DNA of 64,000 nt from Lepidodermella squamata (Eukaryota > Animalia > Gastrotricha). The first letter of the stretch is position 1. Each line of letters begins with the position of its first letter. The notes below the pieces were generated by a model. The model did no database searches, had not been told where the DNA came from, and was given only the letters and a program-made list of their open reading frames with translations. Positions 1,306 through 51,101 of the stretch are shown in pieces. The stretch covers positions 1,178,001 through 1,242,000 of the forward strand of contig JBLDXI010000001.1 in assembly GCA_047495785.1 (NCBI GenBank), given 5' to 3'. The position numbers and the translations under genes are program-made.

Positions 1306-3648
1306 ATGATGAAAACCGCAGTTTTCGGCCTGATTGCTTTCGATGCAATTATGGCTCAGAATTTACTTGTCAAGCAAAATATAACAATCCTAGCTCTAGT
1401 CCCTGTTACCGGGCAAAGTCCATTCAATGGCAGATTATGCTCAGCCGCGATGCAAATAGCGATCGATGCAGTGAACGAAAATCGAAATATTCTACCTGAT
1501 TACCACGTTTCAGCTCGGTATGTCGACGAAGGTCCTCAAACATTGGTTGGGATAAAAAATCTCATCGCATTCAACGACGACGCAACAATTCGAAAAGCCC
1601 CGATCATAGTCGGGCCGATGAATGCCTGCCAAAACATCGCACCGGTCGCTCGGGGCTTGAACTACGTCCAAGTCACCACGCGATGCGCCGGGCCGGTTTT
1701 TACTGCAAATAGGAAGGCCTTTCCTAACCTGTACCGCATCGTCCGTCCTAACGAGATGATGGAAATAGAGCTGCTGTACTTCGCGAAGGAAATCGGTATG
1801 TGGAACCAGGTCGGCTTCGTCTTCTCGACTCGCGTTGTTCCATCTACAACATGGCCGATAGCTGCGAGAAAGGCTGGGATAGACATTTTATTCTACGGAG
1901 GCGCGACTGACTACAACTCTGAGTTCATGCTGACTTTGAAGCTATCCAAGGCGAGAATTATCATCGCATCTCTTCAAGACGCGCCGTCGATAGTTCAATT
2001 TCTATGCGAGGCTTACCTCGCTGGTATTCGGGGGTCTCAATACGTGTTCCTCCTGGTTTCGCCGATAATTGATGTCTTGGGGATCAATCTGACGCCAGGC
2101 TGTACTCGTGACGCTTTTCTCGAGCAAATTAAGATAACCTTCAGAGTTGGCGAGATCAGCGAATCGTCTAATACTACGAAAGTTACCTCGCTTGGCTACA
2201 GCGTCGATGAATTTGAACGGAGGCTCGATAATAGGACTAATAAGGACCGGGGTCAGGAATACGCTGTCCGTTTCAATTGCCACGATGCTATGCAACACGC
2301 CCTGCTGACCCTAGACAACGCCGCTAGAACTCTGCGAAACATCTCTTCCCCGCTTCGATTGGTCGATTTCTCAGAGGAAGTCATGAAAGTTGTGAATCAA
2401 AGCTCGGCTACAACTGATATGATCTCGCTATTCGATAACATGGAATTTTCGAATCGAATCGAGCGGGACAACAAATTTGTCCACGTGATGCAGTGGGTCA
2501 ATAACACCCCGGTCAACGTCTACATGCTGTGGTATCCGTCTAAAGATCCAGAGGGGCAGATGGATATAACAAAGCATAGGTCTTTGAAAATCGCGAATAT
2601 TGTATGGTCGACCCGAAGTGGCAAACCGCCGAAAGATTTGTCGAAAATTCTCGAAATTCAAGAAGTTGAAACTACTACGTCCATCCTAAGCGCGGTCTTA
2701 GTGTTAACCATCATCTTCCTACTATTAGCCTCAGGAATGGTCGTTGTATTTGTCGCGAGACATCAAAAATTGAAAATTATGAAGAGTCGGCTGGAAAAAG
2801 TTTCCCTTGGCCTAATCAGTCTTGCTGTTGCCTTCCTGAATATCGCGGCAATAATGTTTCAAATTCAAAGCTCTAATTCTGTCTGCCCGCTTCGAGTGAT
2901 TTTCCTGTCATTTGGGACGTCAACCCTCGGGCTTGGGCTACTTCTCATGACAAGCCGGTTGAAAAGGTCGATCACTTCAACTCCTCTTCAATCTGTCAAA
3001 ACAATGTTCAGCAGCAAAAGTAAGAAAAAGAAACGGATGAATGCTTCAGTTTCAAGCATTAATTCTACCAAAACTAAGCAGCCAGTGAATGCGTCTGAAA
3101 TCGGCGAGGGAGGCGCTGGGAAAAGCCGCAAATTTTTTATATTCTGCTTCTTCTCGTTCATTGCCCCAATGATCACAACGTGGGTGTGGATGGTAATTGA
3201 TACGCCGGTTAACATAAAATCGCGAAGTATCGAGGCTTTCGACGACACCTTGGACTCGTATTTTGTGTCAGTGGGCAGTTTCTGTGGCTCAAATCACGAG
3301 ATCTATATGGTTTTGCCGATCGGATGCGTCAATGTTGTATCGCTACTCGGCGTTTTGCTAGCGTCTCTAATGAAGGGTAAAGGCGTTGGCCCGCAGCAGA
3401 GCATGGTTTTAGGTCTGAAATACGCGTCGATAAACGCGATTTTCATCTATCTCGCAACTCTCGGCCTCGCCGTTTCGATTCGAGATCAAGTTTGGCTGAG
3501 TGCTGTGTGGTCGATTGGCATTATCATTTTCGCAAATTCGTGCTATTTCTTCTCAATTGCGTTGCCGATCATTTTACAGCTGCTGAGCAAGGAAGTTCCG
3601 GTGCATGCTCCTCTTCAAAGCAGTTTGTCAAAAGGACGAGCTGTTTAG
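1306..3648 (+). CDS. Class C GPCR, GABA-B-receptor-like (Venus flytrap domain + 7TM), intronless, 780 aa
   Basis: Signal peptide; AMQIAIDAVNENRNILPDY and FPNLYRIVRP flytrap motifs; W...PPKD linker with no cysteine-rich domain; seven hydrophobic segments; short C-tail. Confidence 0.85.
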   Translation: MMKTAVFGLIAFDAIMAQNLLVKQNITILALVPVTGQSPFNGRLCSAAMQIAIDAVNENRNILPDYHVSARYVDEGPQTLVGIKNLIAFNDDATIRKAPIIVGPMNACQNIAPVARGLNYVQVTTRCAGPVFTANRKAFPNLYRIVRPNEMMEIELLYFAKEIGMWNQVGFVFSTRVVPSTTWPIAARKAGIDILFYGGATDYNSEFMLTLKLSKARIIIASLQDAPSIVQFLCEAYLAGIRGSQYVFLLVSPIIDVLGINLTPGCTRDAFLEQIKITFRVGEISESSNTTKVTSLGYSVDEFERRLDNRTNKDRGQEYAVRFNCHDAMQHALLTLDNAARTLRNISSPLRLVDFSEEVMKVVNQSSATTDMISLFDNMEFSNRIERDNKFVHVMQWVNNTPVNVYMLWYPSKDPEGQMDITKHRSLKIANIVWSTRSGKPPKDLSKILEIQEVETTTSILSAVLVLTIIFLLLASGMVVVFVARHQKLKIMKSRLEKVSLGLISLAVAFLNIAAIMFQIQSSNSVCPLRVIFLSFGTSTLGLGLLLMTSRLKRSITSTPLQSVKTMFSSKSKKKKRMNASVSSINSTKTKQPVNASEIGEGGAGKSRKFFIFCFFSFIAPMITTWVWMVIDTPVNIKSRSIEAFDDTLDSYFVSVGSFCGSNHEIYMVLPIGCVNVVSLLGVLLASLMKGKGVGPQQSMVLGLKYASINAIFIYLATLGLAVSIRDQVWLSAVWSIGIIIFANSCYFFSIALPIILQLLSKEVPVHAPLQSSLSKGRAV

Positions 3649-4345: not shown

Positions 4346-5317
4346 CTATTCGCTAGGAATAATCAATTCTGGTGGCAAATTTTCAGCGATATATTTGTCA
4401 AAATCAGCCAATAATTGCGGATCTGTGAAGTGATTACGCCAGTCACCGACTACGCCCTTACGAATGAAATCAGCATCCTTCGCGAACACGCCAGCCTGCT
4501 TCGCATCAGTCCAGTTGTAGGCTTCGTTGTTCCGCATTTTCGAAAAACTAGTATGCTCACGGATCTTTTCAACCGTCGCATCATCAAGCTCTTTACCGAG
4601 GTGAGCGGCAATTTTCCGAATGGTTCCAGCATGGTCCTTTTTCATTTCCTCATATCGAAGAATGAGAATGTCTTTACCATTCTCTTTAAGCTGATTGTAA
4701 GACCTCACATGAAGGTGATATGGTCCGTATAGAAATTTACCCTCGATGTAGTCCCTAGCCCATTGATCAAACGTTAGTTTAAATGGCCAGGTCTCGTTAT
4801 CCGAAGCGACTTGTTCATGGTAGAAGGAAACCGCAGCATCTTTGGCGTTTCGATAAATGTAGATCAGTTTCGCTTTGAATATGTTCTTAGGCAGCAGGCT
4901 GGGTTGTAGATGTGAGCTCAGGATCTTCGGCCCAGGTTTCGCGGCGAAGCTCTCCAGCGCAGTTGGCGTCAGAGGTTTCGGCAGCTCCAACAGCATGACT
5001 TCCTCAGGCGGCGGTGGGTTGTCGAAATTTCCGGTTTTTATCAGATACGAAATATAATGAACCCAATGCGTGCCACATTTCGGGAAACTCAACACAGCTA
5101 CGTCGTCCGAAGTTACCGGAAAGTTGTAGATTTGAGGGTAGAAAAGTGGGAAGAAAGCAGGCAGCCAGTGGTCTCGAAACAACGCGCGAGGCATACCGTC
5201 GTCATTGTTGCCTAACGGCTTGACCATTTCGGCAAATTCTGACATGAAGTCAGCCTCATTTTCAGGTGCGCTAGGGTGAACTTTTTCCGGCTTACCGGCT
5301 TCGGAAGCGGCTGCCAT
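4346..5317 (-). CDS. Cytosolic sulfotransferase (class A), intronless, 323 aa
   Basis: PSB loop SFPKCGTHW, catalytic His in ILSSHL, YRNAKDAAVSFY, RKGVVGDW. Likely start is ATG 5317. Confidence 0.93.
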   Translation of the reverse strand: MAAASEAGKPEKVHPSAPENEADFMSEFAEMVKPLGNNDDGMPRALFRDHWLPAFFPLFYPQIYNFPVTSDDVAVLSFPKCGTHWVHYISYLIKTGNFDNPPPPEEVMLLELPKPLTPTALESFAAKPGPKILSSHLQPSLLPKNIFKAKLIYIYRNAKDAAVSFYHEQVASDNETWPFKLTFDQWARDYIEGKFLYGPYHLHVRSYNQLKENGKDILILRYEEMKKDHAGTIRKIAAHLGKELDDATVEKIREHTSFSKMRNNEAYNWTDAKQAGVFAKDADFIRKGVVGDWRNHFTDPQLLADFDKYIAENLPPELIIPSE

Positions 5318-5647
5318 GCTTACAGAACGAAAATTATCAAAACCGAAAAACAACACCAAATAATATCTGGCGTGGAGGGCAAATTTGGAGCTGAATACTC
5401 CCTTCAATAATTTTTTATCATCATGGTCTTATCTTTCTCCACATGCTCGAAAACATCATAAGTGATAAGCGACGACCCACTTTTCATGCGTTTTGCGGTT
5501 CAAAACTAGCCGGTTACACATTATAGCCTTAATTTCATGAAATTAACATTGGAAATCAAATTAGTTTAAAATTTTTGATTCCTCATGTCTGAAAGGTGAT
5601 AGGAAATTTAAAATAAAACAGCGACAATTTGATATAGCGAGCATTAG

Positions 5648-6675
5648 TTATTCGCAAGGTATGAGTAGTTCAGCTGGCACATTTTTCTTGATAAATTCCT
5701 CGAAATCGGACAACAGTTTCGGGTCCTTGAAGTGATTGCGCCAGTCCCCGATTTCGCCCTTGCGGATAAATTCGGCATCTTTGGCGAACATTCCGCTCTT
5801 CTTCAAATCGGACCAGTTGTAGCCATCGTTATTGCGCATGCTGGAGAAGCTAGTTTTCTCGCGAATCTTCTCAACAGTTTCGTCGTCCAAGTCCTTGCCA
5901 AGGAAAGCAGCAATCTTACGAATTGACCCACTGTGATCCTGATATGAAAATAACAATGAAAGCGTTCGAAAATAATTCAATTTTCAGCTAAAACCTTTTT
6001 CATATCTTCGTATCGAAGAATCAAAATATTCTTGCCTTCCTTTCTCAGTTTTTCGTAACTCTCGACGTGAGACGGATAGGGTCCGAACGCGAATTTACCC
6101 TCGATGAATGTTCTCGCGAACTCGTCGAAAGTGGGCTTAAACGGGCTGATAGGGTTATCCATAGCTCGCTGATGATGATAGAATGAAACGCAGGCATCTT
6201 TCGCATTGCGGTAGATGTAGATGACCTTTCCGTTGAAAACGTTCTTCGGCAACAGGTCAGCCGCCAAATGCGAGCTCAAAACTTTCGGACCAGGTTTTGC
6301 TGCAAACCGTTCCAGTGCTGCTTGCAAGCCCGGCCGCGGAATCTCAAGTAGTCCTCGCTCGTCTGGCGGCGGTCCGTTGTCGAAATTTCCAGTTGTGATC
6401 AAATAGACGGTATAGTGCAACCAATGAGTTCCGCTCTTCGGGAAGCTCAGCACCGTAACATCTTCAGGCTTGATGGGGAAGTTGTAGATTTGAGGCCAGT
6501 AAATGGGCAAGAATACGGGTAGCCATTGCCCGTGAAACAAAGCGACAGGCATCCCATGTTCAGTGTTGCTAAGCGGCTTAAACGTTTCCGTTAACTTGGC
6601 CAACATTTCCAAGCGGTCCTTAAGTCCCTGATTGCCGCCATCCGATTGTTTTTCTGCCTCTGATGGCACTGACAT
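5648..6675 (-). CDS. Cytosolic sulfotransferase (class A), 2 exons (6675-5995, 5938-5648)
   Basis: FPKSGTHW, SSHL, RNAKD, RKGEIGDW; 56-nt GT-AG phase-0 intron 5939-5994 at MKK|DH. Confidence 0.93.
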
Positions 6676-7555: not shown

Positions 7556-8578
7556 CTATTCGCTAGGTATAACCAGTTCAGCGGGCACATTTTTCTTGAT
7601 GAACTCCTCGAAATCAGCCAGCAGTTTCGGGTCTTTGAAGTGATTGCGCCAGTCGCCGATTTCGCCCTTGCGAATAAATTCGGCATCTTTGGCGAACATT
7701 CCACTTTTTTTCATCTCGGACCAGTTGTAGCCATCGTTGTTACGCATGCTAGAAAAGCTCGTTTTCTCACGAATCTTCTCAACCGTTTCGTCATCCAAGT
7801 CCTTACCGAGAAAAGCGGCAATCCTACGAATTGCCCCGATGTGATCCTGATACATAGACACAGGAATTAAGGTGGAAATTAATTTAAAAATGTGCCAAAC
7901 CTTTTTCATATCCTCATATCGAAGAATCAAAATATTCTTGCCCTCCTGTTTCAATTTCTCGTAGCCCTCGACGTGAGACGGATAGGGTCCAAACATGAAT
8001 TTACCCTCGATGAACGTCCGCGCAAATTCTTCGAAAGAGAGTTTAAAAGGCCTGGTAGGACTATCCATAGCTCGTTGATGGTGATAGAATGAAACGCAGG
8101 CATCCTTGGCGTTGCGGTAGATGTAGATAACTTTACCGTTAAAAACGTTCTTCGGCAACAGGTCAGCCGCCAGATGCGAGCTCAACACTTTTGGACCAGG
8201 TTTTGCTGCCAACCGCTCTAATGCCGCTGGCGCGTCCGGCCGTGGCAGCTCCAGAAGCCCTCGCTCATCTGGCGGTGGTCCACTATCGAAATTTCCAGTA
8301 GTAATCAAATAGACAGTGTAGTGCAGCCAGTGAGTTCCACTTTTCGGGAAACTCAATACTGCAACGTCGTCAGGCTTTAAAGAGAAGTTGTAGATTTGAG
8401 GCCAGTAGATCGGCAAGAATACGGGTAGCCATTGGCCATGAAACAAGGCGACAGGCAGCCCATGTTCATTGTTGCTTAGCGGCTTGAACGTTTCCATTAA
8501 GTTTTTCATCATTTCCGCGTAATCATTTTGTGCTTGATTGCTGCCGACCGATTGTTTTTCTGGCGATGACTCTGACAT
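7556..8578 (-). CDS. Cytosolic sulfotransferase (class A), 2 exons (8578-7901, 7846-7556)
   Basis: Same motifs; 54-nt stop-free GT-AG intron 7847-7900 at MKK|DH; start MSESSPEK at 8578. Confidence 0.93.
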   Translation of the reverse strand: MSESSPEKQSVGSNQAQNDYAEMMKNLMETFKPLSNNEHGLPVALFHGQWLPVFLPIYWPQIYNFSLKPDDVAVLSFPKSGTHWLHYTVYLITTGNFDSGPPPDERGLLELPRPDAPAALERLAAKPGPKVLSSHLAADLLPKNVFNGKVIYIYRNAKDACVSFYHHQRAMDSPTRPFKLSFEEFARTFIEGKFMFGPYPSHVEGYEKLKQEGKNILILRYEDMKKVWHIFKLISTLIPVSMYQDHIGAIRRIAAFLGKDLDDETVEKIREKTSFSSMRNNDGYNWSEMKKSGMFAKDAEFIRKGEIGDWRNHFKDPKLLADFEEFIKKNVPAELVIPSE

Positions 8579-8879
8579 TGGAAAAGATATAGGTATTGGA
8601 AAAACCCTATAACGTAGGACATATTTGAATTGGCGATTTTTATTTTCTAATTGCAGAGGTGGAAACACATGACTTCTTTCACTTTTAGCCTGACACATTC
8701 CATGACGAGTTGCTTACAGTAAGCCCATTTTGAAAATGGCGAATTGACCTGCAAGATAGGTAAATGCGAGCATGATAAGAACAAGAGGAATGAGGCGCAA
8801 AAACCACCACATGCTGAAATAGATAACACACGCCCTTACCACACCCGGCATTTGCAGTTTCGGTGGGTCTCACTGTTTT

Positions 8880-16440: not shown

Positions 16441-17404
16441 TTATTCACACGGGGCTACCAGCTCAGCTGGCAAATTATCGGCGATATATTTTTCGAAGTC
16501 AGCCAACAGTTGCGGGTCTTTGAAAGGATTGCGCCAGTCGCCAATTTCCCCATTGCGGATAAACTCGGCGTCCTTCGCCTTCTTTGCATCGAACGAAGTC
16601 AGTTCTCGGATTCTTCCAACAGTAGCGTCGTCCAGTTGTTTTCCAAGGTGAGCTGCGACTTTTCGAATAGAACCAACGTGATCCTATATGAAAGAAATAT
16701 GATTGGTCTGAAATTGCAATAAATGGCAGTACCTTTGTCATGTCTTCATATCGAAGAATCAGAATATCCTTGCCAGACTTTTGCAGCTCGTGATAGGCTT
16801 TCACATGGGTATGATATGGCCCAAACATGAATTTACCTTGAATGAATCGCCTAGCGAACTCGTCGAACGTAAGATCGAACGGCCAGTGAGGGTTATGCAT
16901 GCCTTTCAAGTGGTGATAGAACGAAACCACGACATCTTTCGCATTTCGGTAAATGTAAACCACCTTGCCGTTGAATAGTTCCTTGGGTAATAAACTCGGT
17001 AGCAAATGGGTGTTGAGGATCTTAACCCCAGGCTTGGTTGCGTATTTTTCGAGTGTTGTAGGAGTTATTGGCGACGGTAACTCAAGCACCATGTTCTCAT
17101 CTCTAGGCTGTGAAGTTTCAAAGTTTCCAGTTTGAATCAGATAAACCATGTAGTGCAGCAATTCATTGCCTGATTTCGGGAAGCCAATAACTGAAACATC
17201 TTCAGACTTTATCGGGAAGTTGTAGATTTGTGGCCAGTATAGCGGCAGGAATGCAGGCAACCACTGGCCGCGAAACTGAGCCAGGGGCAGACCATTGCCG
17301 CACTCGTTGTTGCCGAGCAAGTTGAACATGTCAGCAAATTCACTCATGAATTGTATCATGACCTCGTCGGAAACCGCGCTCGAGCCTGAATCTATTAGTA
17401 TCAT
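16441..17404 (-). CDS. Sulfotransferase-like protein with two in-frame deletions and altered PAPS-binding motifs (pseudoenzyme or young pseudogene)
   Basis: Exons 17404-16733 and 16683-16441 (49-nt intron). Exon 2 reads ELTSF-DAKKA-KDAEFIRNGEIGDWRNPF versus ELTSFASMRNNDGYNWSDAKKAGIMAKDAEFIRKGEIGDWRNHF in the 23553 paralog. Confidence 0.8.
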
Positions 17405-17831
17405 AATTAAACAATCGTGGCCTAAAAAGTTCAACAGAGATAATCAATGGTTTTGGTTTTGAATTCCATGATTACTCCGTCGGGTGCTAGAAGGGGCAAG
17501 CCTGGAAAGGACTTGGTATGAAGTGGGCATACCCGAGATTTATATTGCCTCAACTGAAAGCTTGGCTCTGAAATTGTTTGTCGACAACTGGACTGAAAAC
17601 ATCGTCCAAACAGGGTAATAAAGTTCCAAGGAAGCCAGCCATGTGGTAACACCTATAATTTATTGACGCAGGTAACAAGAACTTGTCGTGTTCTGTTTGA
17701 AAGAAGCCGCTGTATTAATCATGGCCTGTTTAATGTAAACTTGTTGATAAACAAATAACAAATGTGTCTCCTTTCACACCCAAGCGATTTGTCTGTGGTT
17801 TCTGGCAACTCTCCGGTGGCAATTAATCATA

Positions 17832-20074: not shown

Positions 20075-22426
20075 TCAGAACCTGCTCATTTTAACCAGCA
20101 TGACCGTGCAGCAAACAGTAGAATAGATAATTTGACCGATGGCAAGAACGCTTGCTTGAATGCAGGGCATTTTAGAACCTGACACAATCAACACGATCAA
20201 TATCATCCCCGCAAACATTGTCGTCGCATTAACGACGGCGAGTCGCACTCGCTTACTTCCCGGTGCAAATTCGCTGGGAATCGCCAGGTTTCGCATTCCA
20301 TATGCACTACAACATGCTCCTAACAGAAGAATGCCGTTGATGGCTAGAACAGGGGCCACCCAATAAACGGCGGTGGATGAGGCACACACAAGTTGGGTTT
20401 CATCGTAATACTCGTCGAGAACTTCATCGTAAGTGACTGCGGAGACATCAAGTGAAATCGATGGTTCGTCGGCAATTAACCACATCCCAGCCACTACAGT
20501 CGCAACAAGAGTGATGAGTAAAATGCTGGAGATAAGCAAGATTTTCTTCTGCTTGCTATTGTCACTCTTGGTTATCACCATAGAACCTGTAGAAGGCGGC
20601 TTCGGCAAGGCTGTGGCGCTTAACTGTCCTCCGCTATTGGAACTCATTGTAGTATTAGCAATTCGGCTACCCATCGTTGTTTTCTTGGTGCTGTCCATCC
20701 TTTGCGGCAGATTCATGAGTTTGAAAAAGCTTAGGGCTATTGCTGTGATCACACAATTGACAAGAGTGGTACCGACCGTGGGTAGCAAGGGCCTGAAAAG
20801 GCATTCTACGTCTGGGTACAATAAACTACCAGTCGTGAGCAGAACTGCTGATGCTTTCATTAGAAAACTGCCAATTGTCAGCGCAGAGATTTGAAATTTA
20901 TCGAAATAGGTGCCACGAAGCTGTGGTTTTCGAAGAGCCATGATATAAATCGCAACTTCGAATAAGAGGCAACCGATTGAAATTCCCGAAACCGCCCCAA
21001 CGAAAGGGAGATCACACCGCAGAACTCGATGTGAAACTGAAGACAAATCTTTAGGCGGCTTCCCGTAATTTGTCGACCAGATGATATGGCGCAGCACCTC
21101 AGGTTTGTATTCGAAGAAAGAATTGTTCACTTCAGACTTTTCCACCCTGTCCATCTTAGCAATTATTCGTGGCCTGCCGTTGATCATTTGAACAATCCAC
21201 ATTCTTTCATTCAGTACACCATCGCTAGAGTAAGAGTAGCGGCCTGTTCGAAGGCCGGGAAAGTCAACCGTAACCGCAGCTTTGTTAACAACGCTTTGAA
21301 CCAACTCTCTGTTGTTGCGGAAGTCCAGGAGGCTTTTGTTGAAATCAGCCCTCAAGCGACCTTCTGTCGCATTAAGCGTTAAAAGGGTCGCGGTGATCAT
21401 GTCAAAGCAAATGAAGCGGAAGTCGTAGTCGACAGGAATCTGATTGCCCATGACAGCGTTAAACGTAGACTCAAACTCCTCGTACGAGTAAGCAAACTTT
21501 TGCTTCGTGGGCTCCACATCCAAGCGCTGCGAGGCTGTTCCAGCAAAGAAAGTGCTCTTAATTTGAAGCTGCAACCACTCACGTTTGCAGCCAGGGGGAA
21601 TGGGTAGGTCTGGAGCATTCGGGGAGAACAAACAACTGAATCCTGAGAACAGAAAGACGTAGTAAGGCGCTCGAATTCCGCCTCTATAGGCGAGGCAGAG
21701 CAGGTTCAGACACATAGGTATTTGCCCCATAGATATAAAGATGATTCTAGTTCTTGTAGCTAGGATTGATTTTATAGTATCCATTGTGACGTCATATTCA
21801 TTTGAGTAAAGTAGGACATCGATTCCCAGTTTGCCGGAATACACCTGCATGATTTCTCCAGTCATTACTTCGTTGGCGTTGTTTCCATTTGTCAAGATCG
21901 AAATTTCTTTCCACTTTCCCATCGCCTTCACGAGGTACAGCCCCGCAAGAATAGGAACAGATGCCGGGCCCAAGCCAGGGTATAATGTCGTGTACAAATT
22001 TTTTCTCGCGATAATGTACGGCCCGTTGCAACGTTGAGAGAACTGAGTCAATCCGAGATATCTGACCGTAAGAGAAGATACTTGGCAAGCGGTTGTCGGG
22101 CCTAGTATCACAGGCGATGGGTATACCGTTGTATCGCTGCTCTCGACACGGTCGCGATAGAATTTCATCAGCGCGTTGTTAGACAGTATGGCATTAGCGC
22201 CTTCATTGCCGATTTCCATGCGAAGTTGATATCCAGGCAGTATATCGTCGCGAGCGTTGGCGTAGTCCATCATGATGCGAACGGTAGCTTCACACGCTGG
22301 CCAGGTGTTTTGCCCCTTGTTATCCAACGGAAATATAGCTAGAATGGATAGATTCGCATCAATGCCTGCTACAATGGGAGTTGCAATCATCCAGACAGCT
22401 GAGACAAGCTGCATAAAATAAGGCAT
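20075..22426 (-). CDS. Class C GPCR, GABA-B-receptor-like, intronless, 783 aa
   Basis: Signal peptide; NARDDILPGYQL; WSTNYGKPPKDLS linker shared with the 1306 gene; 7 TM; minimal C-tail. Confidence 0.85.
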   Translation of the reverse strand: MPYFMQLVSAVWMIATPIVAGIDANLSILAIFPLDNKGQNTWPACEATVRIMMDYANARDDILPGYQLRMEIGNEGANAILSNNALMKFYRDRVESSDTTVYPSPVILGPTTACQVSSLTVRYLGLTQFSQRCNGPYIIARKNLYTTLYPGLGPASVPILAGLYLVKAMGKWKEISILTNGNNANEVMTGEIMQVYSGKLGIDVLLYSNEYDVTMDTIKSILATRTRIIFISMGQIPMCLNLLCLAYRGGIRAPYYVFLFSGFSCLFSPNAPDLPIPPGCKREWLQLQIKSTFFAGTASQRLDVEPTKQKFAYSYEEFESTFNAVMGNQIPVDYDFRFICFDMITATLLTLNATEGRLRADFNKSLLDFRNNRELVQSVVNKAAVTVDFPGLRTGRYSYSSDGVLNERMWIVQMINGRPRIIAKMDRVEKSEVNNSFFEYKPEVLRHIIWSTNYGKPPKDLSSVSHRVLRCDLPFVGAVSGISIGCLLFEVAIYIMALRKPQLRGTYFDKFQISALTIGSFLMKASAVLLTTGSLLYPDVECLFRPLLPTVGTTLVNCVITAIALSFFKLMNLPQRMDSTKKTTMGSRIANTTMSSNSGGQLSATALPKPPSTGSMVITKSDNSKQKKILLISSILLITLVATVVAGMWLIADEPSISLDVSAVTYDEVLDEYYDETQLVCASSTAVYWVAPVLAINGILLLGACCSAYGMRNLAIPSEFAPGSKRVRLAVVNATTMFAGMILIVLIVSGSKMPCIQASVLAIGQIIYSTVCCTVMLVKMSRF

Positions 22427-23552: not shown

Positions 23553-24567
23553 CTATTCACACGGCGCTACCAGCTCAGCTGGCAAATTGTCGGCGATATA
23601 TTTTTCGAAGTCAGCCAACAGTTGCGGGTCTTTGAAGTGATTGCGCCAGTCGCCAATTTCCCCCTTGCGAATGAACTCGGCGTCTTTCGCCATGATACCA
23701 GCCTTCTTTGCATCTGACCAGTTGTAGCCATCGTTGTTACGCATGCTGGCAAATGAAGTCAGTTCTCTTATTCGTTCAACAGTCGCGTCATCCAATTGTT
23801 TTCCAAGGTGAGCTGCGACCTTTCGAATTGAACCAACATGGTCCTATACAAAACGGGATTGAAGGGTTAGAAATTACAAATAATGTCAGCACCTTTTTCA
23901 TGTCTTCATATCGAAGAATCAGAATATCCTTGCCAGACTTTTGCAGCTCGTGATAGGCTTTCACATGGGTATGATATGGCCCAAACATGAATTTTCCTTG
24001 AATGAATCGCCTAGCGAACTCTTCGAACGTAAGATTGAACGGCCAGTGAGGGTTGTGCATGCCTTTCAAGTGGTGATAGAACGAAACCACAACGTCTTTC
24101 GCATTTCTGTAAATGTAAACCACCTTGCCGTTGAACAGTTCCTTGGGCAACAAACTTGGCTGCAAATGAGTGTTTAGGATTTTTACAACAGGCTTTGCCG
24201 CATAACGCTCAAGAACTGCTGGAATGCTGGGCATCGGTAGCTCTAGCAGCATGCGTTCATCTTTAGGCTGGGTCGTTTCAAAATTTCCGGTTTGAATCAG
24301 ATAAACCATGTAGTGCAGCCAGTGATTTCCTGATTTCGGGAACCCAATAACACAAGCATCTTCTGGTTTTACAGGGAAGTTGTAGAGTTGGGGCCAGTAT
24401 AGCGGCAGGAAGGCTGGTAGCCATTGGCCGCGAAACTGGGCGAGGGGCAGACCATCTTCGCCCTCGCTGTTGCCAAGCGCCTTAAACATAACCGCAAATT
24501 CAGCCATAGATTTCCTCATCATCTCCTCGTTAGGAGCCGGGCTTGAGCTATCAGTTGGCGTAGCCAT
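23553..24567 (-). CDS. Cytosolic sulfotransferase (class A), 2 exons (24567-23893, 23843-23553)
   Basis: GFPKSGNHW, ILNTHL, RNAKD, RKGEIGDW; 49-nt intron 23844-23892. Confidence 0.92.
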
Positions 24568-35985: not shown

Positions 35986-36411
35986 TTCTACGGCGAAAAG
36001 TTGAACAACCGTCTACACGTCCACGTCTACAACCGTATGCAACGTTTTCTTGCGTTATTATGCCCCATTTCTTGCGCTTTCGCTGGCCATTCAAATTTAC
36101 CTACCCCATTTGCGGTTTCATCTTCATCGTTTCCCCCTATGTATTCTTCGAAGAGAGATCTAGCGGTCTTGATTGTGACATGAAATTCGCGAATCCGTAA
36201 AAAGAAAGGGGGAGGAACTTTGCACACGGATAAGATGAGTCACAATCGGCAGAGTAAAAATCAGCGTGTGTTCGTGCAAATAAAGCACACTTTCATCTCA
36301 TCCGTTCTTGGTCTCACAAAATATGCAAAAAATCTGCAACTCTTTTTCATTTATACAGCAATTCAGACTGCGCAATTATAAGGCATTTTCGGCATACAAC
36401 TTCAACGTCAA

Positions 36412-36915
36412 ATGTTGCCTGGATTAAGATTATTTCTAATTTTATTCTGTCTATTAATATCCGTCGATTTCACGAGTCAAAGCGGTTACGGAATTTGCCA
36501 GGCTGGATGTGCAGCTTTAGTAGTTGCATGTTATAGTGCTTTGGGTCTCACTTTTGGAACAGTTACTGCAGGCGCAGGGACGCCCGCTGCAGTGCTAGCC
36601 TGCAACGCTGCCTTCGGGAAATGCCAAGCAGGCTGTTTTGCCGCTTTAGCTGCTGATGCCGCCATTGTTGGCGGGGCTAGCTCATCTTTTCTGGGTCCGC
36701 TGGGCGCAGTTGCGGTGGTGACAGCATTAGCTGGAACCCTCGCTTACTATTGGGGAACGGACGGCGTTACCCTGTTCAAGGACGCGGCAGTTTGCTACTG
36801 GAAGGCTGGAAAAACGTTTGGCGTCTCTGGACATGAAGGCTGTAAGGAAGTGGCTAAATGCAATGAGGCATTGGGAAGTGGGCTCGCAAAGCTGTTCAAT
36901 AAATCAGCGAAATGA
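36412..36915 (+). CDS. Tandem paralog of the Cys-rich small protein
   Basis: Same Cys motif; YYWGTDGV.LFKDAAVCYW shared with 35155-35691. Confidence 0.75.
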   Translation: MLPGLRLFLILFCLLISVDFTSQSGYGICQAGCAALVVACYSALGLTFGTVTAGAGTPAAVLACNAAFGKCQAGCFAALAADAAIVGGASSSFLGPLGAVAVVTALAGTLAYYWGTDGVTLFKDAAVCYWKAGKTFGVSGHEGCKEVAKCNEALGSGLAKLFNKSAK

Positions 36916-37048
36916 AGTGCAACCCAGACTATCACCTCAAGAGATGTACGTCACTGCTGATATTTGTGAAGTTCGCCAATTTTCCTGAAATGATTATCAT
37001 TCGATAATGTCTTCTTCATCAAATCACAGTAAGAGTCAGAAATTTTAT

Positions 37049-38344
37049 TCATTTTCTGTCAAGACATATTTCGCGTGGTAAATCGCGCATGTTGTATGTG
37101 CTAGCCATGACTTTCCTATAACAAAGGCAAAAGAATAAAAAGCATTAGGAAATGTTTTTTAGCGAAAAATAATGTACTTACCCATAAGCACCAGCATCAG
37201 CGATGAGCAGAATGTCCCCTTCACGAGTGTCGCTTGGCAACTTGATCTGCTTCGCAATAAAATCGCCAGATTCGCATATTTGACCGACGACATCAAAGTT
37301 CTCCTCCTTCTCATGTGATTCACCGCCTCGCAATATCGCCGATAAATTAAAAACATGATGATGAGCTGAATATAGAGCGGGTCGGATGAGCGTATTCATC
37401 CCAGCATCAGTTCCTACAAATCGCCGGCCGCATTTTGATTTCAGCTGCGTTACTCGTGACAGTAAAACCCCAGATTCAGCAACTAGAAACCGGCCTGATT
37501 CCATCCAAATTTCAACATGAGGCGGCAGACTAGTTTTCACAGCTGCTAAATGACGATTCACCTCGACTAAATCTACCTCTTCGCCCTTACGCTCGAAACG
37601 ATGATAATCGACACCAAGGCCACCTCCGACGTTGAGAAATTTGATGTGAGGAAAATGGGTCAGAAATTTAGATAAATAGCTCGCATTCCTAGCCCATGTT
37701 TCTGTATCGAAAAGCTGTGAACCTAAATGGAGATGAAGTCCTATAACACGACAGTTCAACTCCTCCAGGCGATTTCGAACCAACGCCAATTCATCAGGGT
37801 CAGACTCGAAATCAATTCCAAATTTTGATTGCTGTCCGGCTGTGTTGATGTAATGGTGATGAGACTGATTATTAGCCTGACCTGGGTCGAGCCGCAATAT
37901 TATTTCACGATTTTTAAACACGTCATCAGGCCAGTTGAATAAAGGCCACGAGTTGTCTAAGGTGATGTAGCCACAAATTGTGCTTGCTTCAACAAATTCC
38001 TGTCGTCCGACAAAATTCGGCGTGAATAACAGACGATGCCGGGTTAAAATATCCGCGCCAAATATTTCAAGGACGTGCCGAATTTCGTTTAGAGAAACAC
38101 ATTCAAAGCCGCCTGTCAACCGGCCGTTTCTCCAAATTGCGCGGAGGACACCCGGGTTGTGATTGGCTTTCACGGCGAACCAGAGTCGGTCTACGGCGGT
38201 TAAAGTGTTTAAAACGAGGTCAACTCGTTGACTGATTTCCGAGGTGGAATAAACGTATAATGGCGTCGGCTCAGCTTCCTGGTCACGATTAACCAGGTCG
38301 ATCAAGTCGATCTTTTTCCCAAGCCACCACGGTTCTTTATTCAT
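37049..38344 (-). CDS. lysA: Diaminopimelate decarboxylase (PLP fold III), AspK-DapDC-fusion subtype, 2 exons (38344-37182, 37115-37049), 409 aa
   Basis: TPLYVY, PLP lysine in FAVKAN, FECVSLNE, LFTPNF, SKFG, HLHLGS, GGGLG, ESGRFLVAESGVL, GMNTLIRPALY, ICESGD, GAYG. A 66-nt GT-AG intron (37116-37181) restores KVMASTYNMRDLPREICL. Confidence 0.9.
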
Positions 38345-38948
38345 GATAAGTTGTGGCAAAATAATACAGCAAACCGTAATAGCAAGAAATTTAGATAATA
38401 ATAAAGAGATAAGAACTGGCTGTTGGCAAAATATAGCCGATTTGGGAAATTGCAAAGGATAAGATAAATCATTGAAATCGCAGGCTTGAGATATTTGTTC
38501 CTGAAAATTACCAGCTGAATCCCGGGAAATTAGTTTAGCTCAGGAGCATCTCAGGAGAGATAAAAAAATGTGACATTAAAATTATTGTTGAATTTTTGTT
38601 ATATTTTTTTTATACCTATCAGACCTAAATGAGGCCTCCAGATTGTCTGAACATGTTTCATCACCCTTTTTCGTACAATTTTCGAAAAATTTATGTTACG
38701 TAACTTTTCATTCAAAAAATTTACGCACGAAAAATTGAACGTGGCGAAGGCGGTTCAAGCACGCGATTTCAAGTGCCTGATCAATAAAATTTCGCAAAAA
38801 ATAAACTCGGCTTGTGCTTCTCAACGCCGAAAAAACGCCACTTTTCAGTTTCATTCGATCGGATTTTTGTTCGTCATCATTCGATAATTTATTGTTTCAC
38901 TATTAATTTATTTCTGTAAATTATTGTTCAATATTTGCTACCTGAAAC

Positions 38949-41883
38949 ATGACGGCGCCTCTCAACGTCATGTACCGAGCTTCGGTTCGCGACAACTGTT
39001 GCGTTCGATACTGCCGATTTTGGCTGATGGCCGCTCTTGTTATCCTATTCTCCGTTCTATGCATCATGACGTGAGACGTTGAAATATCTATTTTTATTCA
39101 AAATTTGGCAATTTTTATCAAAAGGTTGCCGAAAATTTTCCACCGCCGTCATCACTTCACAAGCAGGCCGAATGTAGCGCAACACGCTGCTCAACACGCT
39201 GCGAAATCTCATGTCGATAAAAGAGCCCCGACCCCGGTTGAAAAGTTCGAACCAATCAACCAGGAATCTCAATCGTTACCTGACGACCACTCGCATGAAG
39301 ATCACGAGGATGAAGGTGATGATGATGATGAACATGGGCTGATGCCGGGCGATGAAGAGCAGCAAGTCGCTAGGCCGGGTATGGGCAGCGAGGAGAAGTT
39401 CCGGCGGCAAATCGAAGACCGCATCAACCCGGCCCAAGTTCCGCGATCGAACAAAAAGCTGGATGAGGATAAGTTGAAGGAATTTGCTGGCAACGCGTTG
39501 CCTGCCCTGGAAGAACCGAACCCGCACGTGCCCCGGGGTGGCGATGTCGAGTTCGAAGGCGTGCCAGTCAATGTGAAACGCGGTTTCGGTAAGACGATGA
39601 AGAAGGCGAATAAGCGGCGTTATGACGATGATAATGAAGACCATTCAGGTGTGTTCAAGGAGGCCAACAGCTGGGCGTCGATTTCGGTCGAGCGGCGCAA
39701 CAAGAAGAAGGACGACGGCAAGCCGCCGAAGAAGGCGAAACGCGACCCGACTAACAAGCACGTCGGCTTGGCGCGCGAGGAGGAAAGCGGCGACGATGAC
39801 GAAAAGGAGCCCGAGCATGACGACGACCACCATCATGATCATCATGACCACAAGCATCACGAGCGCCATGAAGACGCGGAGCATAACCATGAAGAAGCCA
39901 CGGATAAGAAGGTCGAGGACGAGCAGAAACAAGTCGACGCTAAGCAACAGGTAATTTCAAATTCGTAAAAAAAATTCACGGTTTCTAGTAAGGAAGAAGC
40001 GGAACCAAAATTGCCTGAAGAACTTACAGTAATTAAATTGCCAAACATCTATAAGTGACATTCTCCGTGGTTTTCAGTTTTGAGGCCTGGCGAACAATTT
40101 CAGAGCACGACGTAGTCAAGCTAAAAAAAATTAATTTAGAATTGCACTTTTTAGTTATTTGCGTTTGGTTCCAAGTTTTTTTTTAATTTGGGCCCGCTAA
40201 AAGATACTCGGATTTGAATCTATTACTTAATTTACCTTAAATTGAATTCTCAAGGAACAACTGAAACTTCACGATTTACTGGAAAATTCGAAAAACAATC
40301 GGCTAATGGCTAAATTCCCGAGTGAAAATAACTTGCATTAAAATTAATTCAATATTTTTTCAGTTTTTTCAGAAAAAGTTTGAGATTTTTATGATCAACT
40401 TTTAGGACAAACAGGTGGATAAAAATCAGAAAAAGAAGTTGCAGAAAGCTGAACCTCAACAAGCTGATCAGCTGAAGCAAGAAGATGTCAAGCCTAAGAA
40501 AGAAAAATCTAACCAGCCTTTGAAAACCGACGAGCAAGAGCAAAAGCAGCAACAAGAGAAGAAGCTTGAAGCCGAACCCCAAGCCGATGTGAAAAATCTG
40601 AAGAAGGAAGAGGCGAAGAATGACAACGCGCTGGAGGCTAGCGACAACAAGGAAAAGAAAAAGGCTGGCAAGGCTTGCAAGAAGGGTGACAAGAAATGCG
40701 AGGAAAAGCACGAGCATGAAAAGACGGAGAAGAACGAAGCTATGAAGGCCGATGAAAAGATCCAGCAGAAACAAGAGGAAGTCGATGCGGCCAAGCCCGA
40801 AACACCCGAAGTCGCTCAACAAATCGAGAACGAGGCTAATAAACCCGCTGATCAAGACAACGCGGCCGAACCCGAGGCCGATAAGAAGGAAGAGAAGAAA
40901 AAGAGCCGAAAGCAGAAGAAGGTCGAGAAAGCTGCCGAACACTTGAACGCTCAGCTGGATAAAATTCAGAAGAAGTTGGAGAAAAATGGTGATGTGAATC
41001 TGCACATGGAGTTAGATCAGGCTGATGTTCAGCGGAATCTGGTGAAATATTTCGCTAAAAAGCTGACCGATGACCAACACAAGGACATGGTTGAAACAAT
41101 CAACGCCTGCCATGCCATGTTGAAGCGGACGAAACTTCGGTATTTCTTGCACGGCCGATCGCTGCTTGGATTCTACCGCCACGGCATGAATATGATCCCG
41201 TAAGAAAGTTTCAATTTAAAGTGAATTTTCGAAATTTTTATTCAATTTTTTTAGATGGGACAATGAAGCCGAGATTGCGTTGTTCGCCGAGCAAGTCGGC
41301 AGCGTCGACTCACCGGCCGACTACTACCTGAACTTGTTGAAGAAGCGCGGGTTGGAAACCGACGAGTACAAGTTGAAGAAAAAGTCTGATAACACGTTGG
41401 TTTTCCGCAAAAACGCCGACCCAGTCGACGGTTTCCGCCCCACTGTCACCATTGTCATCCTCCGCGTGGTTGACAAGGACACGCAGAAGCAGGTTTTCAA
41501 CTTCGCAACCAACGACCGCGCTGCCCAGAAAGGCATGATTGTCACTGAGGGCCGCAGCCAAGAACCGGTAATTTTTAAAATAATTTTAATTTTTTTATTA
41601 AAATGAAATTGTGATTTTTTAGTATCCGTTGAGCCTTGTTATGCCGTTGCAATCGGCGACTTTCGAATCTACCGTCGAAACGTTCGTTCCCAGCCGCCTT
41701 CGTGATGTCCTGTCGAAGATGTACGAGAATCCGGCCATGTGTGAAACGCTGCCCATCGTGCGTGACGATATGCCCGATCACGAGATGCGCGTTCAAGTCG
41801 AGTGCAGCCAACTGGCCAACATGTACCAGATTACCAATGTCCTAGATCAGGCGGTATTGAAAGCGCCGAAAATGGGCGCGTAA
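38949..41883 (+). CDS. LicD/fukutin-family type II membrane protein with long charged stem, 5 exons (38949-39070, 39125-39950, 40406-41199, 41255-41567, 41623-41883), 771 aa
   Basis: N-terminal anchor FWLMAALVILFSVLCIM; spliced YFLHGRSLLGFYRHGMNMIPWDNEAEI and YPLSLVMPLQSATFE...P...LSKMY match LicD-family motifs; all introns GT-AG with compatible phases. Confidence 0.75.
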
Positions 41884-46651: not shown

Positions 46652-49600
46652 TTACTTAGCTCCGTTTTGTTGCAAAAACGTTACAATAGGATCATCCCGG
46701 GCGAATGCGGCCTGCATCAAAGGCGTAACACCGTTTCGTTTTCTCACGTTAATTAGCGCCCCGCGCTCGTGCAGTAATTTCACAATTTCAAGATGACCGC
46801 CTTCAACGGCCCAGAACAGCGCAGTAGCGCCTTCTCGATCAACCGCATTTACATTAGCGCCGATTCGAAGCAGAAATTTGACAACCTCCTTATGACCCTG
46901 ATGAGCTGCCTCCATTAAAGCTGTCATTCCTGCATCATCACTCGCGTTGAGATCAGCCCGTTTCGCCTGAAGGAACTGCACGATTTCGAGGTGGCCGAGA
47001 TGAGACGCTAGAATTAACGGCGTTGTTCCATCTTTCTGCTTCTGATTGACATCCCCACCATTCGATTGCAAGAGTTCAACGACAGCTGTATGGCCCCCTC
47101 GAACTGCAGCAATCAAAGCGCTTTGACCAGTCCGATCTGTCGCGGTGATTTTCGCGTTTTTAGCTAGAAGAGCCTTCACAACTTCGATGTGACCACTTGC
47201 AGAGGCGGAGATCAAAGCCGTTGACCCAGTGCTATCTGATGCATTGACACTGGCTCCTGATAGAAGCAAAAGATTAGCCACCTCAAGATGGTTACTCGCC
47301 GCAGCTTTCATCAACGCATTTTGCCCAGATCTATCGCTAGCGTTCGTTTGGCAGCCATTTGCTATCAAATACTCGACTACGTCCCTATAGCCCCTCTCAC
47401 TCGCAGCCATCAAAGGAGTTGAACCATCTCCTTTCGCTGATGTTAGGCTTGCCTTGGTATTCGCATGGAGGAGTTTCACGATTTCGAGATGACCATTCTC
47501 TGCCGCGAAGTAGATGGCGGTTGATCCGTCTTGCGCATGCATACCGACTGTAGCTCCGCTTGATATCAGCAGATCAGCCACATCTGCTCGGCCCTCCTTC
47601 GCTGCAATCATCAACGCCGTAATCCCATCACGATCAGCCGCGTCCACCTTACAGCCGTTGCTTAGCAAAAACGGAATCCCTGTTACACAGTGGCTATTTA
47701 ACGTGGCTTGCATCAACAGGGTGAAGCCGTTCTTCTTCGTCGTTGTCATTAGAGCGCCGAAGCTGTGTAACAACTGAACAGCTTTCATTTGACACTTCTC
47801 AACAGCGTAGAACATTGCAGAAGCGCCATGGCTATCAGTTTGATTGATTTTCGCAGCTTTTGAATGCAGTAGATGAATAATATCTACGTTACCCTTCGCA
47901 GCAGCTTTCATCAAGGCAGTAGTTCCTCTGTGGTCATGTGAATCAGGTCTTGCCCCTGCTTTGAGTAGAAAATTCGCTGCGTCACTCGAGCCACCTTGAG
48001 CCGCGCATAGTAAGGCACTATTACCCGAGCGATCCGTTGCGAAAACATCCGCGCCGTGCTCTATCAGCTCTTCAATGACATCGGCATGGCCATTCAAAGC
48101 GGCTAACATCAGAGCAGTCGTCCCTTCGAGATCTGGTACGTTGACTTCAACGCTGTGTCCAATCATTTTTAGAAGGGCTTTCACCACGTCTAGATGACCA
48201 CCGTGGCAAGCCAACATCAAAGCAGTTCGGCCTTCATCGTTCGTCACATCCATTCTAGCTTGATTCTCTTGAAGGTACTGCATTATATCAGCCCGGCCTG
48301 TTGCACTCGCGATGAGTAGGGGGTTCATACCGTTGAAATCAGCGTCATCTAACGAAGCTCCGCCTGCTCGATGAAGGAGCCGTACAATCGCTAAGCTTCC
48401 CGTTCCTGTCGCTGCCATTATCGGAGTCTCACCCAGGGCATTTTTCTTATGCACTAGGGTCGGATCTGTTCGAATGATTTCTTCGCAGTCCGAATAGTTA
48501 CCTCGAAGCGCTGCCATGAATAAGCTAGAGTTATCATTCGGGAAGCCTAATTTAGCTGTCCAATAGCGAATAGCAGCGATTTTGCAAATAATTTTCTGAC
48601 CGACAACTTCCACCAGTGTTTTAAGTTGAGCTTGCTCAGGCGTAGGATCGTCTTTGTTTTCAACTATCCGCATAAGGGCCGAGTCACCTAGGGCATCTTC
48701 CTGAGCTAGAATTTTAGCAGTGTCGACCCGAGCTCTGTTCAGCTTCGTGATTAGATTCGTCAGTAGCTCAGCTGCGACGTTGTGCTCAGACCCGAAGCTG
48801 GTAATGCGCCATTTTGACAGATACAGTAGATGAAAGAACGACTGGCTATTCGGCCCGTATTTCGCTTTGCACAACTTCTCAATGGTGTGGCTGTCAGTTT
48901 CACTGAGAATAGGTTTGAGGATCAGTTTCCGACGACGAGTAGCCGCTCGGTACAAAACATCGGCATTTACGAATTTCGCTTTGATTTCCGAAGGATCCTG
49001 TTCGATGAAGCGGCCAACTTTTGCTGCATCGCCTGCAGCTTTATGAACGAGATGATGGACGCAGTAGCCAAGATGTAGCCTTTTCTCACTTTCGACAGCA
49101 TCAACGACTTGGAGTAAGGCTTTGGCGTGGAACTGAGCGCAGATCGTAGCAGCCTCGGTTTCTTTAAGGTCCCATAATACTGCAGCGTCTGCGGCATCAA
49201 TAGGCTGGCTGTAATCGAACAGGAGAAACGAGTAGAAATACCATCGCATTTCATTGGTCTCTTTGCTCAAAATGAATAGAAGCAACTTCGTTAGCGTTCG
49301 TAAGGGCTCGGCAGTAGGCATGCCATCTTCGGGCCGGCGGGAGAGTGCTTCACAAAGGAAGCCGTAGATTTTATTTGGATCTTCTTGTTCGTTCGCCGTG
49401 AAACAGGCCCGTATCATCGCACCGATTAGCGGCAGCCCTAGGGACATTGGAGCAAGTGGTTTCAGCTTGTTGAAGCCAAGCCGATCTTTTAAAGGATTTT
49501 CTAGAATGTGTAGCATCTGTCTATCATTCATCTCTTTAACAGGAACCGTTCGAATGTTATATCGATGACCATGAAGACCGGCTTCTCTAGCATCTCGAGT

Positions 49601-51101
49601 GATGGCTACACAACGGATCGTGTTGCCAAGATTAAGGAGGGTTTCGACTATCCTCTTGTTGTTAATGTCGTCCAGGACAAAGAGGAAGCGCTTGGTCGGA
49701 TCCTTTTCCAAAAGAGTTTTGATTTTAAGACGAGTGCGAGGCTTGATTGAACCGAACTCCGATTCCAAGACATCAGCGACTTCGTCAACAAAAGCATCTT
49801 CATCGAAGGACTTCGATTCCTTGAGAACATTGAGCCAGGCAATGACTTCGGCGTGGCATTCGTACCATAAAAATACTTCGTGCCTTTCTTCGTTCAACAA
49901 AGTTGCCACGATACTAGTTTTGCCACATCCGCTATTGCCGGTTATCATTAAGGTGGCTGAAAAATTAGCAATTATTAGTTGTGTTCGGTGGCTAAAAGGT
50001 TAGACGTTATAGGCCCAGGCGGGAATTGAACCCGCGATCTTCTGTTTACGAGACAGACGCTCTACCACTAAGCTACTGAGCCCGGATGATTTCAGCTCAT
50101 AATTTTGAGATAATAATACTTATTCAAACCAACTTACCGGGGCTTTGAGCGTCGCAGACAGTTTTTATGCCAAATTTAATTTCGTTCTCCTCATCCCGAT
50201 CTTGATAATTCGAGCACGGCAGAACGACGCCAATTTTCCGCATTCGCTGAATTTTTGGCAGGTTATGTTCCGGTGCTTTCGACTGCCTTTTCGCGTTATC
50301 CCGCTGAACCCTGGCCTTATTAGGCGGCAAGACATCCTGAGGGCCCTTCGGAGCTGCTGGCATTAAAGACTGCTGGTTAGACATGATCTTATTGCTGGCG
50401 ACACTTGGGTCCATGCTAAGAGCCGTAGTTTGACGACTGAACAGGTAGCCTGCCTCTGATTGGTTTGTATTTTTGAACCGCAAGTTGACTTGGCTAGGTT
50501 TGTTTGAAGTATGCGAAGCGTCTGAGTCACTATCTCTACTTCCAGCTGTTTCCAGTCGCGAGGCCTTTTGCGGATTAATTGTGAATCGGTTTTGATTCGC
50601 CATGGCTCCAATTCCGCCCCCTGCTGCGATATAGCTGGTCTGAAGGTATGACGCCAGAAGAGCATTAGAAGACAGTCCATTGGAGTTATAACTTGGCTCT
50701 CTGGCTATGCCGCGATTCCCATCGAAAAGATTCTTGCGGTGAGCTGCTTTCGGGGAGGAGCTGGGCGACTGTTCTCCCGGCCGACCTGCTACGTGAGGTT
50801 TCCGCTCACCATTCGGCTCTTCAACTTGCGGTTGACCCGTGTGGAAATTACCTCCGGGAGCGAAGTAAGGCGAGCTTGATGGTAGATGGAAAGTTTTGCG
50901 GTAATCCATTTTCGGTGAATCTGTCATCGACATAGGTGGTGAGTTGTGGCGCTGTTCGGCTACAGCCTCAGCAAGCCCAACGCCCAAAGCCCACGCTCCC
51001 TCAGGCTTGCTCGAATTCGGCTCTGGCTGATGAAACTGTTCGTTCAACTGGTTCATCCTGTTTCTGTTCATTTCAGCCTGCTGAAGATGCCTGGTCGACA
51101 T
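46652..51101 (-). CDS. STAND/NB-ARC-type P-loop NTPase with ~19 C-terminal ankyrin repeats and a low-complexity N-terminus, 2 exons (51101-50138, 49956-46652), ~1422 aa
   Basis: Walker A GNSGCGKT, Walker B FLFVLDDI, sensor AITRD, GLPL, MHD-like VHH; GxTALMxAA repeats; phase-1 intron 49957-50137 joins the two ORFs in frame. Confidence 0.82.
50011..50082 (-). tRNA. tRNA-Thr(CGT)
   Basis: GGCTCAG/CTGGGCC acceptor stem, TAGCTTAGTGG A-box, anticodon arm TCTGT-CTCGTAA-ACAGA, GGTTCAATTCC T-arm; 72 nt, no encoded CCA; T-run downstream. Confidence 0.95.

Follow-up and report, generated by a model that had tools for sequence, protein, structure and literature searches.

Diaminopimelate (DAP) decarboxylase is the final enzyme of the lysine route in bacteria and plants. 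Animals are, to our knowledge, taken as unable to make lysine, and the accepted exceptions are sap-feeding insects, in which acquired DAP-pathway genes complete the pathway of a bacterial symbiont. A DAP decarboxylase gene (lysA) in the genome of Lepidodermella squamata, a gastrotrich, therefore raises the question of where such a gene came from and what it might do in its host. The gene lies on the minus strand, in two exons, at positions 37049 to 38344 of the stretch of 64,000 nucleotides that was analysed (hereafter, the window), and these are also the coordinates assigned to it in a preliminary description made from the letters alone. We consider it probable that this host-integrated gene is non-animal in origin and encodes a functional DAP decarboxylase, namely a stand-alone PLP-dependent enzyme that would convert meso-DAP into L-lysine and CO2.

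Gene structure and protein family

Exon 1, as delimited by the list of open reading frames and the enumeration of splice solutions, occupies 37182..38344 on the minus strand and comprises codons 1-387 together with two bases of codon 388. It opens with an ATG at 38344-38342 and carries the codon of the PLP-lysine K59 at 38170-38168; alignments and the residue mapping from the DAP decarboxylase (DAPDC) of T. maritima further place H204/H206/S209, GGG240-242, E282/R285, R321/Y325, C357/E358 and Y387 within it. The intron (37116..37181, minus strand) is AT-rich, 66 nt long and of the form GTAAGT...TTATAG, and it interrupts codon 388 in phase 2. Exon 2 (37049..37115, minus strand) supplies the last 21 codons, including the C-terminal M-x-S-x-Y-N, and the TGA stop at 37051-37049. 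When all pairs of exon ends restoring a single open frame were enumerated, just one solution combined canonical GT-AG ends with a kept frame, giving a product of 409 aa; its junction, 37116-37181, is the one at which the preliminary description had put a single spliceosomal intron. The unspliced frame runs into an immediate stop (TAT GGg taa), and translation would cease after residue 388, so that the conserved C-terminal motif is lost if there is no splicing; in all relatives aligned, M-x-S-x-Y-N stands directly after G-A-Y-G, and in the window copy it is exon 2 that provides it. We infer that the 66-nt intron is spliced. Beyond the coding region, an AATAAA polyadenylation-type hexamer was read from the sequence at 37044..37049 on the minus strand; in the mRNA (TGAATAAAATTT) the stop codon and this hexamer overlap, and the latter, at 37049-37044, would act as the poly(A) signal. 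At the other end, only 5 residues precede the WW motif, just as in stand-alone bacterial and eukaryotic members, so no targeting extension is present, and a cytosolic location of the predicted enzyme is the best explanation.

The family searches used the exon 1 product (387 of 409 aa). Pfam recognises in it Orn_Arg_deC_N (PF02784, 3e-33, profile positions 3-247 of 247) and Orn_DAP_Arg_deC (PF00278, 9e-25, profile positions 2-95 of 95), which together make up the fold-type III PLP decarboxylase architecture of a TIM-barrel N-domain and a C-terminal beta-sheet domain. The top NCBIfam model is PRK08961, the bifunctional aspartate kinase (AK)/DapDC, whose positions 484-840 (of 861) are matched with 373.5 bits. 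The lysA model TIGR01048, with a curated cut-off of 297.9, gives 260.3 bits to exon 1 alone (387/409 aa), 280-281 bits to the eukaryotic relatives Paulinella and P0051, 304-320 bits to bacterial stand-alone members and 310.5 bits, above the cut-off, to the full-length closest homolog, P0001. Every one of the motifs WW, TPLYVY, FECVS, LFTPNF, TLDN..PL.NWP, LRLDPG and MASTYNMR is found. These motifs and the Pfam, NCBIfam and PDB matches agree with the earlier view of an intact DAP decarboxylase with its main motifs, and the resemblance to the DapDC half of AK/DapDC fusions, which had also been pointed out, is reflected in the scores, PRK08961 exceeding TIGR01048 (373 vs 260 bits).

The absence of a kinase half, likewise reported before, extends to the whole 64-kb window, in which tblastn with seven aspartate kinase halves returned noise only (best E 0.039, away from the gene); a kinase remnant near the gene is ruled out by the same search. 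Judged by its sequence, the gene resembles the decarboxylase half but falls outside the fusion family. It shares with LysAC (PRK08961; Legionella, Rhodanobacter, Rhodothermales) the WW start, FECVS, LFTPNF and TLDN, at 39-46% identity, but it is eukaryotic, has an intron, has no kinase/ACT half and is changed at two family-invariant positions. Stand-alone LysA (TIGR01048; 2YXX, 2P3E, E. coli 1KNW) has the same two-domain fold-III organization, with alignments of 1e-31 to 3e-39, whereas the window protein is only ~30-35% identical to it and has Glu at the Asp65 equivalent. The subfamily is one that is fused to aspartate kinase in many bacteria and some protists, the clade of the window gene being kinase-less and, as far as can be judged, otherwise known only from unicellular eukaryotes.

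Origin of the gene

The closest homolog, P0001, is 50-52% identical to the window protein, and all others are at or below 48% (5.8 billion proteins; 1.84 billion representatives, searched exhaustively). P0001 is encoded by one uninterrupted, intronless ORF on a 10.4-kb contig of the ENA assembly ERZ27333047, whose neighbouring genes, for the RNA polymerase III subunit Rpc31, a DEAH helicase, a temptin-like protein and a UCH protease, identify the contig as eukaryotic. The two best matches of a sulfotransferase encoded in the window come from this same assembly, which on that account would hold a related animal, with the caveat that sulfotransferases are a multigene family. P0001 and the window protein have ESGR, GSQ, GQICES, DFIAK and a lid insertion in common; no synteny was found between the surroundings of the two genes. 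Most likely, the decarboxylase predates the split of the two animals, and its acquisition would have taken place before that split. Since P0001 is a single uninterrupted ORF, the intron would have been gained in the lineage of the window or else lost in that of P0001. The search of the JGI metagenomes for more orthologs gave one irrelevant 27% match, and that of the ESM Atlas for look-alikes gave generic bacterial DAP decarboxylase clusters only.

In the maximum likelihood tree (IQ-TREE, LG+C20 PMSF, 103 rows, 385 columns) the window protein and P0001 are sisters with support 100/100, inside a clade of 13 rows with UFBoot 98 and SH-aLRT 92, the bootstrap being not fully settled (correlation 0.985). 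Most rows of this clade are metagenomic proteins, and the members that could be identified are eukaryotic without exception: Paulinella chromatophora (P0047), P0051, with CCT and eIF1A as contig neighbours, and P0385, next to an EF-hand/PH protein kinase. None of the 13 members has a kinase half, and no named bacterial genome falls within the clade; outside it, the backbone of the tree is without resolution. The kinase-less eukaryotic members (P0047, P0051, P0385 and P0001) are thus the nearest to the window gene in the tree (98/92), being stand-alone, of similar length and 38-52% identical; the protist ones are intronless or N-terminally extended, and the window gene is the only one shown to lie among animal genes.

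Bacterial relatives are more distant, the best 80 loci of 185,579 species genomes reaching only 39-46% identity. They are mostly fusions and belong to Legionellales, other Gammaproteobacteria, Rhodothermales, Myxococcota, Acidobacteriota and others, and with such values spread across many phyla a close bacterial donor was discarded. Among unicellular eukaryotes, too, the subfamily is widespread, with members in the holozoan Pigoraptor chileana (1007 aa), Naegleria lovaniensis (1057 aa), Willaertia, Balamuthia, Gocevia, Endostelium, Anaeramoeba and Paulinella chromatophora; the Pigoraptor and Naegleria proteins are true fusions, since each resembles bacterial kinase halves over its N-terminal half (1e-46 and 1e-53, respectively). 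In an animal, the window gene looks foreign, and on these comparisons it is nearest to protist genes. This does not sustain the designation of the gene as a domesticated bacterial-type one in the preliminary description: the nearest homolog is eukaryotic (52%), the clade (98/92) is eukaryotic where identifiable, and bacteria stand at 39-46%. AU tests, carried out on a 43-row subset under LG+F+G4 with fast searches, rejected neither a sister position to the nearest bacterial row (delta lnL 29.4, p 0.105) nor a bacterial-side placement (delta lnL 16.7, p 0.21). A single protein of 385 columns cannot separate a protist, an unsampled bacterial and a holozoan-ancestor origin, and the donor was presumably a protist or a bacterium outside the present sampling.

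The holozoan-ancestor origin, which we hold to be unlikely, implies vertical descent: the ancestor had an AK-DapDC fusion, this lineage kept the decarboxylase half, and nearly all other animals lost the gene. The Pigoraptor protein has the composition expected of such a fusion, its N-half being a kinase and its C-half belonging to this subfamily, and in FastTree and quick trees it stands just outside the 13-row clade; lysAC has also been reported in Salpingoeca rosetta (PMC7971027). A clade of the window protein, P0001, Pigoraptor and P0308 was not rejected either (delta lnL 13.3, p-AU 0.31), but the model behind this AU test was simple and the search fast, and in the maximum likelihood trees the animal pair stands nearer to Paulinella and the sequences of protist context (98/92) than to Pigoraptor. 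Besides, no named animal protein is present among the best 120 matches (5.8 billion proteins), so that vertical descent needs many independent losses. In the phylogeny that had been proposed as a check on the transfer, a direct bacterial donor finds no support as stated, and the holozoan clade with Pigoraptor stays at p-AU 0.31.

Active site and substrate

The roles of ten active-site residues have been described for the T. maritima enzyme (PMC8277567), and 10 of 10 have counterparts in the window protein when this is aligned with 2YXX. K59 corresponds to Lys46, the residue of the Schiff base, H206 to His179, S209 to Ser182 and E282 to Glu246; E81 takes the position of Asp65, where Glu is found across the whole LysAC-type subfamily. 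R285 and R321 are equivalent to Arg249 and Arg285, which contact the distal carboxylate of DAP, and E358 to Glu315, which reaches its distal amino group from the other subunit (PMC8277567). Finally, Y387 matches Tyr343, and Y395, encoded by exon 2, matches Tyr351. K59, H204/H206/G208/S209, G240-242 and E282/R285 are invariant in both alignments used (A1 and A2). Among 320 relatives, 76 columns are at least 90% conserved, and the consensus is kept at 71 of them; P0001 also deviates at all five off-consensus columns, and at four of them the two proteins have the same residue. Changes that are common to both and not conservative lie beside catalytic residues: ESGR replaces EPGR, which is invariant in the 320 relatives (Pro to Ser), and the lid loop has two extra residues and has lost a 98%-conserved Gly. 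These changes could shift specificity. Overall, the protein looks like an active DAP decarboxylase, perhaps with a tuned active site, and its predicted reaction is the decarboxylation of meso-DAP at the D-centre to yield L-lysine.

A changed job, with fold and PLP chemistry kept and a substrate other than meso-DAP, for instance D-ornithine or D-lysine, seems to us quite improbable. It would give a reason for ESGR and for the 2-residue lid insertion at or beside the active site, both common to P0001, and an insertion in the same loop of a diatom LYSA has been reported together with substrate promiscuity (10.1101/2020.10.01.322594); the related solved enzymes, moreover, include D-ornithine and D-lysine decarboxylases. 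Nonetheless, both arginines for the distal carboxylate and the glutamate for the distal amino group are retained, and the window protein aligns end to end with the solved DAP decarboxylases of T. maritima (2YXX, 2.9e-39) and Aquifex (2P3E, 1e-38), with the D-ornithine/D-lysine decarboxylases (5e-13, against 1e-39) and the ornithine decarboxylases (1e-4 or weaker) far behind. The ortholog P0001 also scores above the lysA equivalog cut-off.

Genomic integration and biological role

Exon 1 is transcribed. In run X2, TGGTATCAACGCAGAGTACATGGGG occurs at a contig end; we read it as the 3' portion of the SMART template-switch oligo, and the run is identified as cDNA on this basis. The X2 contigs span 37146-38367 at low depth, with zero depth over the upstream spacer (38368-38837), and none of the contigs listed runs across the 37115/37182 splice junction. 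On the 3' side, the convergent neighbour (36412..36915, plus strand) encodes a protein of 167 aa that is predicted to be secreted, is rich in Gly/Ala/Cys and matches nothing in Pfam. The stop codons of this gene and of lysA are 133 bp apart, and since transcript contigs extend to about 37058-37074, the two genes overlap at their 3' ends.

The remaining genes of the window include two class C GPCR-like genes, five sulfotransferases, two FLVCR-like MFS genes and one P450, together with an NB-ARC/ankyrin protein, Sushi-repeat proteins and a weak match to a Cys-loop ligand-binding domain, and the named proteins closest to the neighbouring sulfotransferase come from diverse animals and are 32-36% identical to it, which puts the host in a lineage with sparse sampling. 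The class C GPCR-like genes, the P450 and the weak Cys-loop domain fit the clearly animal neighbours listed in the preliminary description. A scan of the window with Rfam found one tRNA and nothing else. Animal genes flank lysA on both sides, at distances of no more than 150 bp and of about 500 bp. GC content is uniform along the window (0.459 in the gene, 0.45-0.51 in neighbouring genes), and GC3 is 0.439 in the gene and 0.42-0.59 in its neighbours.

The stretch was found in three runs, each of a different study. In run X1, depth is ~65 for contigs that match the window exactly and ~67 for diverged contigs of a second copy, with similar values in the flanks; there is thus at least one diverged second copy, which spans the gene and its flanks together. 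All the frame-breaking indels listed for this copy fall in 37119-37168, within the intron, and its single coding indel is of 6 nt and lies in a variable loop. A third form, to all appearance without the intron, shows up at 37099. Ten of the 14 coding differences listed are synonymous and 11 of 14 are at third codon positions, which is an indication of purifying selection on the gene, to be read as such and not as a measured dN/dS, since the tally covers the listed differences only and 85 further ones lie outside.

The gene is integrated in the animal genome, and contamination is excluded by the intron, the read depth, the flanks and the second diverged copy. That a microbial gene was wrongly joined to an animal scaffold, as might be suspected of a mainly bacterial family with no close named animal homolog in databases, has next to no probability against a canonical spliceosomal intron that splits a conserved motif, animal genes within 150 bp and about 500 bp at uniform GC, a depth equal to that of the flanks, a diverged copy covering gene and flanks, and recurrence in three studies.

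Transfers of DAP decarboxylase into animals (whitefly, mealybug, anthozoans) have been reported before. In Bemisia tabaci and Planococcus citri, a foreign lysA is fixed in the genome and completes the pathway of a symbiont (PMC4943190); these hemipteran genes come from Planctomycetes and alpha-proteobacteria and work in bacteriocytes beside acquired dapF and dapB (PMC4943190). They are, like the window gene, foreign DAP decarboxylases in animals, but of a different subfamily, and for the window gene neither a symbiont nor a partner gene is known. For the anthozoan ancestor, a transfer from chlorophyll-c algae has been reported, with the DAP decarboxylase Seriatopora_29443 listed as alga-derived; it is comparable to the present case in that an enzyme of this kind in an animal has eukaryotes, not bacteria, as its nearest relatives (PMC4878875). 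No anthozoan or insect protein occurs among the best 120 matches of the window protein (5.8 billion proteins), and because of this its gene probably represents a separate acquisition, of a different LysA subfamily. The diatom LYSA was set aside as a relative, given its reported PVC-bacterial origin and different LysA type (10.1101/2020.10.01.322594). What is new here, as far as sequence comparison goes, is that the enzyme is of the LysAC type but kinase-less, that its nearest clade is protist-like, that a second animal carries an ortholog and that the intron is specific to one lineage.

The likeliest role for a functional, host-integrated enzyme would be the conversion into lysine of DAP from digested bacterial cell walls, and such a lysine salvage is plausible. 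A broader proposal, which we put forward tentatively and regard as possible rather than probable, is that a bacteria-eating, free-living animal makes part of its own lysine without a symbiont: cell-wall hydrolases would free the meso-DAP of the prey, the decarboxylase would convert it, and a DAP-type immune elicitor would be destroyed along the way. SLC46-type transporters carry DAP-muropeptides, and the MFS genes located 4-7 kb away were considered as importers of this kind; they match FLVCR1/2 (SLC49) instead, and a link to the decarboxylase was rejected on this ground. As a rough estimate, DAP amounts to a few percent of the lysine already contained in bacterial protein. The gain in lysine from DAP is probably small, so that selection may act via something other than bulk nutrition.

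The finding also bears on how such genes are read, as "bacterial-type" motifs can hide protist nearest relatives, and this alters both the assumed donor and the age of the transfer. For the biology of the organism, it places the last-step enzyme alone in a free-living small invertebrate, with its active site intact, and a second related animal keeps it. If the enzyme is active, the only obvious source of its substrate is the meso-DAP of bacterial cell walls, which makes peptidoglycan salvage directly testable.

Possible further copies, and relatives, of the lysA-like gene

In contigs of two sequencing runs, X1 and the cDNA run X2, the match to the window ends at 37099, inside exon 2 of the lysA-like gene, and continues as TTTTCTAGCCATGACCATAGCGACATCAGA, such loose ends being found in both runs. 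Read on the minus strand, the contig sequence past this point has an exon-2-like segment fused in frame to an exon-1-like one, the intron being missing; this form carries a 3-nt insertion, and a shorter V-A-M stands in place of G-A-Y-G-K. It may be a diverged third copy free of the intron, either a retrocopy or a paralog, devoid of the PLP-binding tyrosine. When X1 contigs were compared with window positions 36300-39100, 14 were at least 99% identical, 3 fell at 95-99%, 4 at 90-95% and 4 below 90%, and the summed X1 depth over the same interval reaches in places 3-4x the single-copy depth. This region may be present in more than two diverged copies, comparable to a degenerate polyploid.

Among the members of the clade holding the window protein, P0246, P0391, P0242 and P0011 (from L084, a contig of JGI 3300082588, and L088) possess N-terminal extensions of 190-360 aa, with neither similarity to aspartate kinase nor a Pfam match. 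These are either uncharacterised fused domains or the product of ORFs called through upstream sequence.

Convergent neighbour at the 3' end

The 3' end of the lysA-like gene (37049-37115, minus strand) converges with a plus-strand gene for a predicted secreted Gly/Ala/Cys-rich protein of 167 aa (36412-36915), 133 bp separating both stops. The cDNA contigs of the latter extend to 37058-37074, and therefore the 3' ends of both genes overlap.

Other genes in the window

Cytosolic-type sulfotransferase genes form a cluster on the minus strand (4346-5407, 7556-8698, 16499-17434 and 23788-24567), with an additional member at 5977-6675; for one of them, the nearest relatives are 41-50% identical and belong to the ENA assembly that also contains the lysA ortholog, ERZ27333047. 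Two intronless class C GPCR-like ORFs of ~780 aa (1306-3648, plus strand; 20075-22426, minus strand) combine an ANF-receptor ligand-binding domain with a weak 7tm_3 match, and a single minus-strand tRNA gene (50011-50082; Rfam, 74.8 bits) is flanked by protein-coding genes. A single minus-strand ORF of 1098 aa (46652-49948) begins with an NB-ARC/AAA_16 NTPase, followed by many ankyrin repeats in a row, an NLR-like architecture that is typical for the immune-receptor expansions of invertebrates.
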